A stretch of DNA of 64,000 nt from Adineta vaga (lineage: Eukaryota; Animalia; Rotifera), in the NCBI GenBank assembly GCA_021613535.1, contig CP075494.1, positions 12,462,001 to 12,526,000 on the forward strand, in the 5' to 3' direction. Below, one piece after another: positions 56,861 through 64,000 of this stretch. The position numbers were made by a program, and so were the translations under genes. Below the pieces are notes generated by a model. The model searched no databases and was not told the DNA's origin. It was given only the letters and a program-made list of their open reading frames with translations. Within the stretch, counting starts at the first letter, position 1. The number at the start of each line of letters is the position of its first letter.

Positions 56861-58645
56861 ACGACAACGTTATTTTGTTTTGTTTTCCCACTACATAACA
56901 TAATTGTTAGAAAAAGAATGTAAAGATCAGTATATTCAGAAATATTTATTTCAACAGTTCATCAAAACTAATCTATTCGAATAAAAATATCTCAATCTTC
57001 TAATCTTTCAATCATGAGTAACTATTCTTGTCATCTCAAAATTACTGAGAAGGAATGCTGATGTGTATCTACAGACAATTAAGCTCTGGACTCCATTCAT
57101 TCTGTCCTAGAGTAACTACGTATATATATTATTATCTAATTATTCTATCTTCATATTTAGAATTATTCTCAAAAACAATTCATCTTTCTACAAATTTATT
57201 GTCATCAGTAAAATCAATCATATATGAATAGATTATGATTTTTAATATAAATAAAGAAGAACGAAATCACATGACTCTTTGATGACGTATGAATATCTTA
57301 TTACGTTTCAATTATTGAATATTAAAAGTACCGCTGATAAAATCTCTCCTGTTAGTTATATATACATCGTTCTATGGCATTGAAGTTCAAAAAGTGTTCC
57401 ATTGAAAATATTTTTTAGTCACATGATAAATGCATGTGACTAATCTTTAGTTTATAGAACATAACAACAAATTGTTACTTTAAAAAATCACGTTATATGC
57501 TGTGTGTCTCTATTGAAGCGAAACATATTTAGACGTGTCAATGTGTATGAAATTCGAAAAAGTAGTAACAAATATCATAGCACCTTAACAAGAAGAAAAA
57601 AAACGAAAGAGAAAAAAATTTCTGAATAGTTTTTTTTTCTCAATAATCATTGTCAAGTACTGAAGGTAAATGTAAGACGATAGTGTTAATATTCAGATAG
57701 TTAGGTAAGGTTTAACTTCTTTTTTTTCTTCCATTTATCAAATAAGATAAATTCTTGTTGTAAGTGTTATTCTTAATTAAATTATGAGGTGCACTTTTTT
57801 AACACATAAACATGAACGTTGTCAGATGAATACAGATGCGGGCAATAAAACTGATAATCTCATTTTAGCCGGAGTGTTTTTGATGATGTGAATGATCATG
57901 CTCTTTATTCACAAGCTTTCTTTTTTCTCTTATTCAAATTATTGTAATGCATATATTAAGTACTATTTTTCTGCACCTATACATTATGACCAGCAGGTGA
58001 CAGAGCAAAGAGCAAGACAGAAAAAAATACAAATACTTTTAGTTATGGTAATAAACTGGTGAGCATGTAATGTTCGATTGGTTCGAAACGTCTATGAAGC
58101 AAGAAAGAAAAGAACCAATTAACCTTGTTAGATAATAATTATCTTAGTTAAATTAAAAGAAAATCATTGATGAATCACAAATCATCAGTACAAAATGGAA
58201 ATTTCCTCTGAACAATGAGTATTTGCATTCGTCATCGTTAATGAAAACACAAAACTGATTTTGTTTTTCATGGTCAAATTATGTGGACAGTTTTAATCTT
58301 GTCATTCTACTTTTTTTTCTTCTCTTCTTATGCAAAACATCAATATTCAATAATTTTTCTTTCGTTTCTTTGCCTTGCATGAATGAGTAAGATTAGATTC
58401 TCATATTTATAATGTTTATATGTTTATCTATTCTGACAGTTTTATATATTTTCTTTTTATTTCTTCACCCACTCGAACGACTTATCCATCTTAAGATAAA
58501 AAAAATCTTCTTGTTCAAGAGTAATCCAATTGCAATTCGTAAATTAAACATGATTAATTTCCTCTTGTTTTTTTTATAGAAAGGAAAAAGAACTTGAAAA
58601 AATAAACATAGTTTTTCTGACCTTTACTTATATATATTCTTTAAA

Positions 58646-60678
58646 ATGGAATATTCATCGAAAAAACAATCATGGATTGAATTTATCAATGAATCCATGG
58701 GAAATACTATTCCGAATACGTCGAATAATTTTGATCATGCAACACGAACGAATCATACAAATTATTCAATGATTGATTCTGACAGTGAGTCGAGGCACAA
58801 TATAAATTCAGATCAAAATCAACATGCACCTGAAACTCGACTTAGTGGAAAATCCAAAAATACTCAACGACCGATCGGCAATTTAATTAATGGTAAGTCA
58901 TTATTTTCTTGTTCACTGTTCATTGAAATGGAAAAGTCGTCATAGTTATCTATTAATGACAGTAATTTCTTCTTTTTCTTTTTTCTTCTTCGTTTATATT
59001 TCTTTCGCTTTATATAAACACGCCTTCCAAGCACGACTACATCTCTCGACATCGTTCCTGTAGACGTTATTCAGCTGTACAGAGATACAGGGCAAAGAAC
59101 ACGATGACTTCGTCTCCAGATATATACATGCGCTTTTGTCGGGTACAAATATATGTAAAAGAAAAATCAGAGAAATAAGCTTGCTGACAAACACACATTC
59201 TTTTTCTTTTCTTTTCCTTCAGTTTTCTTTTTATCGTTCTCGACATCGTCCTTCACGTCGCAATTTATAATAGAAACTATATTATTTGCATGTACGCTCA
59301 TGGAATCTCGCGTTTTTTTTCATGTCATCCATTTATATAAATATTAAACTTGAACATTTTCTCGAGCAAATTTTTCCAATTTTATCTTGTAGAATTCTCT
59401 GATAATATTGTAATTTCATCAGATAGCTTTTCTCATTCCTACTATTTGAACATTTTCCATTCATAAATGCTTTATAGAGAATAAAAGCAGTCAACAGAAC
59501 TGGTAGGCGCGCTAGACGTAATTGTAAAAACAAAATGAGAAAGAATACTGTCGAATAGGAAAAAATAGACAACGTCATTAGCGAGTATGAATATTATACA
59601 TTTGTTATTTGCCTTTCTGTGTGTGTGTGTGTCTCTTTCTCTCTCCCTTTCTTTCTCGATTTTTTTCCTGTCGAGGTTTTTTTCACTATTACTGCACTGC
59701 AATGACGCACATATTTCTAATGTAGAAATTACCTTAGATTAACTTTCATTGAATAAACACACAAGAAAACGACTATGCATGTTTAAACAACAAAACTAAA
59801 TATGTCATCAAGTATTAAACAGCAACCGATTAGTCCAGTTTCGTATAATTCATTTTCAAATTCCTTTTATCATCATCGATCATCGCCATCGTCGGTAGAA
59901 AATGAACAATTAACACCGACAATACATAATACTATGGAAAGTTCATCAACATCAATATTAATGACATCAACAACAACAAGTGACACTGGGAGAGGTTGGT
60001 ATGACTGAACGATGATGACGAGTTTTGTTTATTTATTTATTTTTCGACATGGAATAATAAATACTATTTTCTTTTCAAAGTATTTTTTTTCCGTTAAGAT
60101 ACATTTTTTTCTTTTTGAACTGTACAATTTATCTAGCTATTTCTCTTTTCATTTAGGTTCATCAACTCACGAAGAAAAACGTCATTGTGTATGTATAATG
60201 AAATTCTATTGAAAATAATGAATTACATTTTCCCATTTCTTAAAGGCCGTATGTAGTGATGTTGCTTCTGGTTATCATTATGGTGTATGGAGTTGTGAAG
60301 GTAATAGTTCCTTAAAACAAAGTAAATATATCTAAGAAAATTTGAATTATTTTAGGATGCAAAGCATTTTTTAAACGAAGTATTCAAGGTACAAATGATT
60401 ATATATGTCCTGCAACAAATACATGTACAATTGATAAACATCGTCGTAAAAGTTGTCAAGCATGTCGTTTACGTCGATGTTATGAAGTTGGAATGACCAA
60501 AGGTACAGCACGGCGAGAAAGAAAATATCGAAAAAAAGCTGTATCTGTCTGTAAAATTACATCCACTTCTTCACATTCGAATACAACAACAAATAAACAA
60601 GATCATACACTTTCAATATCAACAACGAGTACGCGAACATCAACAGGAACACCTTCCGGCTCTCACACAATTAATAAT

Positions 60679-60721
<43 letters not shown>

Positions 60722-61924
60722 GTGCTTTTGTTTCATCACAACCATTGCAAACAATGAAAGTATGATTACTTCTTCATTAAATTTAATTTTTTCTTTGTTG
60801 ATATTCAGTCAACGTCGGATTCAACACGTTCTACAACAACAACTACTGAATTTCTTTCGACTTTATCTCAAGCATCTCGTCTTAATTTACCAGCTAAAAT
60901 CGATCTAAATCGTCCATTAGATGATCAGTATTTTCTTCAATTATTAGCAAAAATTTTCGATCAAGAATTAGTTGTTCTTATCAATTGGGCAAAGGCGATA
61001 CCAGGTATAAATCTTCTTTTTTTTTTTAATTTTTAATTGCTTTACAAACAAATCCTTTTTCGTTGAATAGGTTATACAGAACATTTAACACTTGATCAAC
61101 AAGTAACAATGATTGAACAGAGTTGGTTAGATGCATTACTTCTCGATATAATCGAACGTTCCGTCGAACGTAATGATGATTCACTTCAATTTGCACCTGA
61201 TTTTATCATCTCACGGTAATGAACTAATCAATCTTATTCTATTGAATTGTTTCTATTGATTTTTTGTTTTAGCAATCGTGAACTATCAAGTCCTATATTA
61301 AGTTCAATGTGTACGTATTTGTTTAATATATTGCAAGCATTCAAAGATCCACGTACAACACATGATGAATTTATTGCTTTGAAAGCAACAATATTAATAA
61401 ATTCAATCCCAACAACGATATCTTCAACAAAAGCATTTCGTATTTTAACAAATCAAATCTATCAAATTGTACAATACACATGTGATTCAAATCCAAGTGT
61501 ATTTCATGATAATTATATACGTCATTTTACTCTCCTATTACAATTACCACATATAAAAATGTTAAGTTCGAAATTAATGAGAGTATTCATTGATATGCGT
61601 AGTAATGATTTATTACCACAAGCTGATCTTTTATTAGAAATGCTTGAAGCACAAGATATATTTGACGTAACAGTTCATATGGATGTTGATAATCTTTCAT
61701 CACAAACAAAAGCTTACAATCAAGATTCTATACCAAATACAAATCTATCAACATCTCAATTTTCTATTGATAATCCATTATTATATCCTAATCAGTATTC
61801 AAATCTCAATCAACTATCAGAAAAACGTTCATCATCATCACCCACTCTTCCACATTTTCATTCTACTGATAGTATATCTCCATCAAATCCTGAACATATT
61901 TTAAATGATGATTCATCTTATTGA
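58646..61924 (+). CDS. ESR1: Estrogen receptor orthologue (nuclear receptor NR3A) with two candidate first coding exons
   Basis: Spliced [69 protein letters not shown] (ER-type GVWSCEG, not ERR GVASCEA); [23 protein letters not shown] and AF-2 DLLLEMLEA. Confidence 0.92.
60673..60720 (+). repeat. (AAT)n repeat encoding poly-Asn in the ER hinge
   Basis: Seen directly in sequence. Confidence 0.9.
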
Positions 61925-62951: not shown

Positions 62952-64000
62952 TTAAAACTTTGCTTGATAGACGGAACTGTCACGTTTAGATACATTATCG
63001 CATGTTGTTCTTCGAAGATCTTCTTCATTATGTTCGATTGGTATTCTACGACTTCTTTTCCATAAAGGCCAAAAGAAAAGATATCTAAAAAGAAAAACAC
63101 ATCATAAACAATAAAAGAAGGAGCAATAACAATTATTCAACTTACCCACTGATTAACAACGGAAGAATTCCAATTACAGCTAGGATAAAAAAGATGATAC
63201 CTGGATAAACTTCAATAGTTCTTGCATAGATCGCATTAGCAACAATACCAACAACATATGAACCAAGTGTTTCAACAATTCCGGTAGCAATAAATACAAG
63301 TGCAAATTCTGTATCATTGACTAATTTTGTTAAATGTGATCGTAAAACAGCCATGACAACAAAAAATAAACATCCGATAAACACAGCTTTTCAATCGAAG
63401 AAAAAAAAGATTAGTTTTTATTTTTTGTCAAATTTTTCAAGAAATTTTTTACCCAGATAAAGAAACCAGACTGTTTGCGCAAGACCAAATAAAACTAAAT
63501 GAATTACGTACAATAGAATTCCAATAAATGGTAATATTAATGAATTAGTAAATCGATTTTGCCAAAGACTAAGAATAATTGATATGATGATCATTAGAGA
63601 AAATTGTGCACTGGTTAATATTGCTAAAGCTAATACATCAAAACATAATGGTTTTCCATAGAGATAGAGCGGATGAATACTTGCAAAACCAAATAAAACA
63701 ATGAAAAGAAGAATTTGTGCTAATGTTAATAAGATTATTGAACGTTGATTATTACCATGACGTTTAATTAAAAATACTTGATATGTACCACGTATTGGTG
63801 ATAGACGAATTTTTAATAATTGTTTAAAAACATGAAAAATACTTCGACTATTTTCACCACGTGATTCAGGTTGAAAAATTAATAGATAAATTAATGCTGC
63901 AACATTCAAACCTAAATTAACTGCCATTGGTAATGTATAACCATGATAACGTAACCAAAAACCAATACCTAATAATGGAAAAATACGTGTCAAAGCTACT
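62952..64000 (-). CDS. MFS transporter, SLC46/PCFT-like (3' part; 5' end outside window)
   Basis: IGFWLRYHGYTLP, FQPES, LYLYGKPLCFD, LRSHLTKLV..EFALVF and AIYARTIEVYPG; introns at ~63388-63452 and ~63086-63145. Confidence 0.8.

Follow-up and report, generated by a model that had tools for sequence, protein, structure and literature searches.

The window analysed here, a 64-kb stretch of Adineta vaga DNA, carries an intact and spliced estrogen receptor (ER) gene of the NR3A type with a product of 558 amino acids (Table 1). All of its introns are GT-AG, and every coding exon is open in its own phase. Spliced contigs from four studies carry the intron joints, and the listed pieces have the same letters at the pocket codons; the runs behind them are RNA only by guess, and splicing is shown by the intron-free contigs themselves. 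The start at ATG 59802 matches that of the A. ricciae orthologue. Open frames, GT-AG introns, spliced contigs from four studies, and low dN/dS rule out a pseudogene or a sequencing error.

Table 1. Features of the estrogen receptor locus and its surroundings (window positions; residues in ERα numbering)
Feature	Position	Strand	Detail
Upstream exon	58580..58892	+	Joint 58892>59726 in one contig of run X1
ORF from ATG 58646, in upstream exon	58646..58945	+	Frame check: spliced out of frame with ER
First coding stretch, A/B region	59802..59994	+	ATG 59802; exon start 59726
32-base coding exon ending in first Cys of zinc finger 1	60157..60188	+	Joints in runs X1, X5, X11
Coding exon, zinc finger 1 to ER-type P-box (GVWSCE/GCKA)	60246..60300	+	
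Coding exon, remaining DBD and hinge	60356..60759	+	Pfam zf-C4, E 1e-18; hinge poly-Asn run at 60666-60733
LBD helices 1-4	60809..61004	+	PDB ER match, E 2e-6; E353 at 60965 (GAA)
F350 codon (ERRα F232/F328 position)	60956..60958	+	TTC
LBD helices 4-5 and beta-turn	61071..61215	+	Best PDB match oyster ER 4N1Y, E 6e-7
W383, D385, D390, E393, R394, F404	within 61071..61215	+	W383 at 61124; D390 at 61145; R394 at 61157 (CGT); F404 at 61190 (TTT)
Last coding exon: LBD helices 6-12, F domain, stop	61273..61924	+	PDB ER match, E 9e-10; C425 at 61310
Helix 11 pocket face	61574..61588	+	L521 at 61574 (TTA); V524 at 61583 (GTA); F525 at 61586 (TTC)
Q536, A537, AF-2 helix DLLLEML, charge-clamp E542	61619..61645	+	Q536 at 61619 (CAA); A537 at 61622 (GCT); E542 at 61637
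Adjoining exons of a multi-pass membrane protein	63142-63993	-	SLC46-like major-facilitator transporter look, by eye

The open reading frame in the upstream exon is similar in blastp (E 1e-6 to 1e-4) to N-terminal extensions found on paralogous bdelloid ERs. A single spliced contig covers it, and there an out-of-frame join brings a stop within the first few codons of the next exon. This frame may be a former N-terminus of the receptor that has become an upstream ORF. Within the LBD, the best PDB sequence match of 60809-61215 is ER-PRS*, a computationally thermostabilised design and not wild-type ERα. Bdelloid ERs naturally carry D407 and Y341; as few as 0.3% of ERs have Y341, which in the ER-PRS* design makes a tyrosine corner that adds stability (PMC8131754).

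By its sequence, the gene is a true ER (NR3A). The DBD is a C4 zinc finger with the ER P-box (CEGCKA) and is 80-88% identical to those of mollusc and vertebrate ERs, whereas the ERR compared differs at diagnostic positions (GVASCEACKA and KRT). Each LBD exon finds ERs as its best match, and the best ~100 non-rotifer profile matches, following the bdelloid entries, are all ERs. Helix 12 reads DLLLEML against HKLFLEML in ERR, and the ERR-type combination of a CEACKA P-box, KRT, and helix 12 HKLFLEM was not found in the A. vaga ER. The fold comparison used AlphaFold's prediction for the LBD of the A. ricciae orthologue (mean pLDDT 90), which shares 56/65, 41/48, and 109/127 residues with the three A. 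vaga LBD exons. Its search ranked ERs first, with ER beta, ER alpha, and oyster ER at Z about 29-31, and the model resembles agonist-form ER structures. AlphaFold usually models nuclear receptors in the agonist form regardless of ligand need, and the agonist-like model is not evidence on constitutive activation.

An NR3 tree, built with one long-branched ERR as outgroup and having an open base and a long acanthocephalan branch, places 17 bdelloid rows among the ERs as one clade, whose sister is an ER from Pomphorhynchus laevis, an acanthocephalan (100/99). Rotifers stand apart from the molluscs, whose partner in the tree is the annelid Owenia (95/95). The P. laevis sequence is annotated as a "hypothetical protein"; it is an ER, and helix 5 (about 383-400) is missing from its gene model, probably through a skipped exon.

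The genome searched is a 100.8-Mb assembly of six contigs. The window gene lies on contig C5, and a second ER copy, on contig C2, matches NCBI protein I4U23_007356 over the exons compared; the window gene is one of two ohnologous A. vaga ERs. In the public model I4U23_007356, zinc finger 1 is missing its residues between AVCS and CKAFF, probably because a small exon was overlooked. No NR3 genes other than these two were found in the genome, which has two occurrences of the ER motif CKAFFKRS and none of the ERR motif CKAFFKRT. No recognisable ERR (NR3B) was found in the genome, where an ERR query reached only 35-55% identity; since such searches score only the best candidates, absence of ERR is likely but short of proven. 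ERR is otherwise widespread in animals. Neither A. vaga copy has an open-pocket partner to repress. Perfect EREs showed no enrichment in the genome (6 sites, with 4 for the control) or in the 64-kb window.

The original prediction had read the LBD as carrying F350, L521, V524, F525, Q536, and A537 in ERα numbering, with E353, R394, F404, and the AF-2 motif DLLLEML retained. Direct codon reading and exon alignments to solved ER LBDs agree on every one of these residues. The alignment is ungapped over helix 3 and over helices 11-12, and it places R394 and F404. Numbering comes from a 58-sequence alignment in which the mammalian ERα reference row returns the expected A350, E353, W383, R394, F404, G521, H524, L525, L536, Y537, D538, and E542, so the register is right. 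Where an estradiol-type pocket has A350, G521, H524, and L525, the A. vaga receptor has Phe, Leu, Val, and Phe, and it keeps the A-ring clamp E353/R394/F404. Further changes that had not been listed are T347A, E385D, G390D, W393E, F425C, and M517L. The H524V substitution holds for this A. vaga copy but not as the bdelloid state, because 34 of 35 bdelloid sequences have Leu there.

The remaining substitutions extend across the group. L521, F525, Q536, and A537 occur in all 35 bdelloid sequences, a set that includes some redundant cluster members, and F350 occurs in 20/20 bdelloid ERs and in the single acanthocephalan ER. Position 350 is Ala or Ser in 133 other ERs, and position 521 is always Gly, Ala, or Ser in 168 others. 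The P. laevis ER reads F350, I521, Y524, L525, A536, and G537; F350 and L/I521 are thus confined to bdelloids and the acanthocephalan among the ERs compared. About a dozen further bdelloid metagenome loci that reach the LBD show the same pattern. Bdelloid entries named "Estrogen receptor" in UniRef and NCBI (Adineta, Rotaria, Didymodactylos), names given by automatic annotation only, are orthologues or ohnologues with 70-85% identical LBD exons and the same residue set. One very diverged invertebrate ER-type metagenome gene (JAAUYG010228072.1) carries Cys at position 350, and its helix 11-12 region is altered.

Given this wide distribution, the residue set is an old, conserved lineage trait. 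Copy-specific degeneration is ruled out, as the second A. vaga copy and all bdelloid ERs share F350, L521, F525, Q536, and A537. LBD divergence between the two A. vaga copies (dN 0.09-0.12, dS 0.56-0.76) indicates purifying selection. If the single acanthocephalan gene model is right, F350 and a bulky residue at 521 are older than the bdelloid-acanthocephalan split.

The heavy remodelling of the pocket is evident from the positions lining it. Over 18 positions that we take to be pocket-lining, the A. vaga ER differs from mammalian ERα at 11 and the oyster ER at 8. Summed side-chain volume rises relative to mammalian ERα by 198 cubic angstrom in A. vaga and by 228 in other bdelloids, falling to 117-147 when F425C, which frees about 80, is counted. 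For scale, the human ER cavity measures 402 and estradiol 245 cubic angstrom (PMC3886901). The volume sum is a crude measure, because the oyster ER gives +3 despite its occluded cavity.

A structural precedent is found in ERRα (NR3B1). F350 lies, as had been noted, at the position of a pocket-filling Phe that clusters with three others in ERRα (PMC4041375, PMC10178695), and that receptor is constitutive through Phe232/286/399/414 (PMC4041375). Estrogen would clash with its Phe232 and Phe399 notwithstanding the Glu/Arg pair (PMC4041375), and for the Phe matching A350 the conflict would extend even to the A ring of the steroid. Since both ERRα and the ligand-independent oyster ER keep this pair, its retention in A. 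vaga says nothing about binding. Bdelloid ERs have Phe at three of the four cluster positions (350, 404, and 525), where the match at 525 is one we infer from the ERR alignment, and they share the Glu/Arg pair (PMC4041375). They differ in belonging to another subfamily, as seen in the P-box and helix 12, and in the fourth Phe, on helix 12 (540), which is Leu in bdelloids. To this set the bdelloid receptor adds L521, and it has lost the His partner of the 17-OH. Taken together, our analysis suggests that the A. vaga ER is very probably insensitive to estradiol.

Whether such a receptor activates without hormone depends on helix 12 and the coactivator groove. Across 17 bdelloid ERs, 14 of 15 groove positions are invariant, as against about half of all LBD positions, and the groove and its charge clamp match those of mammal and oyster. 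Such conservation argues that the LBD still recruits coactivators. In human ERα, A350F reportedly renders the receptor constitutive. In one side-by-side assay, however, human A350F was devoid of activity, none was seen at the basal level for Y537A, and L536Q behaved approximately as wild type (PMC7137763), whereas a review lists L536Q as gain-of-function (PMC5148801). L536S, together with L372R, has been used to favour the inactive helix-12 position (PMC8131754), and L525F alone abolished the activity of an ancestral lophotrochozoan receptor (PMC3886901). These conflicting assays indicate that single-residue effects depend on background, and the constitutive activity of the bdelloid ER is accordingly put forward here as something we infer.

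Two supporting arguments of the original prediction fared less well. It had tied activation to the Y537 and L536 substitutions of endocrine-resistant breast cancer. A small residue at 537 is, however, the usual invertebrate state (Cys or Ser in molluscs, Cys in Owenia), so A537 is no telling equivalent of a Y537 mutation, and Q536 is polar. It had also attributed mollusc constitutivity to pocket filling. In the oyster, filling per se is not the cause; constitutivity rests on the larger hydrophobic F536, which packs helix 12 (PMC3886901), and the Gln of bdelloids at 536 is a change in the opposite direction.

The comparison with molluscs favours a separate route, as had been suggested, on the grounds of both residue alignment and NR3 tree. 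Mollusc ERs (Crassostrea gigas ER 4N1Y; Bridgham et al. 2014, PMC3886901) have in common with bdelloid ERs an ER-type DBD, E353/R394/F404, an intact AF-2, F525, the loss of H524, and a small residue at 537. They differ in having W415, Y/F524, F536, A350, and G/A/S521, whereas bdelloids have F350, L521, L/V524, Q536, and C425 and lack W415. The mollusc combination of F536 with W415 or an aromatic 524 does not occur in bdelloids, which read Q536, E/D415, and V/L524. F525, found in 35/35 bdelloid sequences as in mollusc-type ERs, is Leu in the acanthocephalan and in Owenia. An independent origin is therefore the simplest account, and an origin shared with molluscs is disfavoured, because F525 is the only state in common and neither the acanthocephalan nor Owenia has it. 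Constitutivity has been measured in mollusc ERs, while in bdelloid ERs it is a prediction from residues.

On the reading we prefer, an ordinary ER DBD would bind ERE-type DNA, and the LBD would no longer take estradiol, with F350 from helix 3 and both L521 and F525 from helix 11 protruding into the steroid cavity and the 17-OH-binding His lost. Together with F404, these three residues may form an ERRα-like hydrophobic cluster that stands in for the ligand. The cluster would hold helix 12 active, so that coactivators could dock on the conserved groove even when no hormone is bound. The plug would have started, as F350 with a bulky 521, before the bdelloid-acanthocephalan split, separately from the mollusc W415, Y/F524, and F536. 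The residues, their conservation, expression, ER identity, and the groove are observed, and a predicted occlusion and activity are added to them. Against the constitutive reading, F425C frees space, F536 is absent, human A350F was inactive, Y537A and L536Q were not constitutive in the same assay, L525F killed the ancestral receptor, and the published account of a Brachionus ER with an open pocket and a response to estradiol conflicts with it. We consider an occluded-pocket, ligand-independent activator to have about an even chance of being correct.

An alternative is that the receptor is still regulated by a ligand, with a smaller or non-steroidal molecule occupying a pocket that was reshaped and not abolished. 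The Glu353/Arg394/Phe404 clamp would then hold a phenol, with room opened near helix 7 by F425C and T347A, both of which reduce bulk. The clamp is present in all bdelloids, whose pocket is invariant at 13/18 positions, and D390 and E393 bring polar groups near it. ERRγ has F525 by sequence alignment, yet structures of it with ligands exist. Rotifers, moreover, respond to steroids and phenolic probes (PMC5336670). The ligand-independent oyster ER and ERRα nonetheless keep the same Glu/Arg pair (PMC4041375), packed core residues are conserved as well, and the cavity of ERRα, with Phe at 350, is only about 100 cubic angstrom. Small-ligand regulation thus appears unlikely, though it deserves serious consideration.

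The receptor could otherwise be ligand-blind and weak or inactive, acting as a DNA-binding repressor or competitor. Such a system is known from amphioxus, whose ER orthologue (BfER) has 11/18 pocket residues changed, is estrogen-insensitive, and acts as repressor of an activating paralogue, with which it competes for EREs (PMC2527136). The inactivity of human A350F (PMC7137763), the inactivating effect of L525F in the ancestral receptor (PMC3886901), and the ability of a polar 536 to favour the inactive helix-12 position (PMC8131754) point the same way. BfER, however, has lost R394 and F404, whereas the bdelloid ER keeps both, and the amphioxus lesions R394C and F404L are absent from A. vaga. 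There is also no activating NR3 paralogue in that genome, as the residue set is common to its two ERs and the searches turned up no ERR, and the groove and charge clamp are nearly invariant. A repressor role is consequently improbable.

Among rotifer ERs, function has been studied solely in the monogonont Brachionus manjavacas, of the same phylum, for which an ordinary estradiol-activated receptor was reported (Jones et al. 2017, PMC5336670). There, an ER-like LBD gave estradiol-dependent yeast growth and an open modelled pocket; the comparison with the bdelloid ER follows the published description. The A-ring clamp retained in A. vaga would be compatible with the same behaviour. That receptor, though, comes from another class, shares 25% identity with human ER, and was identified from a sequence that leaves out its DBD. 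The two rotifer classes may differ, or the Brachionus receptor may not be the orthologue. No monogonont (Brachionus) ER was among the matches listed in the homologue and representative searches or among the metagenome loci of the pattern scan, which is a gap and not evidence of absence. F350, L521, F525, and the lost H524 all face the steroid, and we consider estradiol activation in A. vaga very unlikely. The view of the gene as an ERR or an ER/ERR chimera, in which Phe at 350 would be trivial, may draw on the ERR-like states F350, bulky 521, and F525 and on the lack of a separate ERR in the genome, but is practically untenable given the ER-type P-box and DBD, the LBD exon and profile matches, helix 12, and the fold search.

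The literature searched, whose scope is thin on subscription journals, yielded no paper about the pocket of bdelloid ERs. The pocket substitutions of the bdelloid ER are real, lineage-wide, and apparently undescribed, whereas the concept of a constitutive invertebrate ER is already known from molluscs. The broadest proposition, that the bdelloid and acanthocephalan ER became ligand-independent by convergence on the ERRα plug, independently of molluscs, and replaces a lost ERR in bdelloids, is tentative, and we regard it as rather less than an even prospect. If true, the steroid switch would have been lost naturally a second time by a different structural route, and estrogen effects in bdelloids and acanthocephalans would not run through the ER.

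The bdelloid ER would stand beside that of molluscs as a second natural experiment on the loss of an allosteric switch, with another set of residues. Substitutions that inactivate or activate human ERα, depending on the assay, are here fixed and conserved in another background. Reviews treat rotifers, like annelids, as protostomes whose ER binds ligand (PMC8222990), a claim that for rotifers depends on one Brachionus study. The function of the bdelloid receptor bears on whether the ER of rotifers is estrogen-activated, as has been claimed. A plugged ER in bdelloids and acanthocephalans would qualify this picture, and it matters for the use of rotifers in endocrine-disruptor tests.
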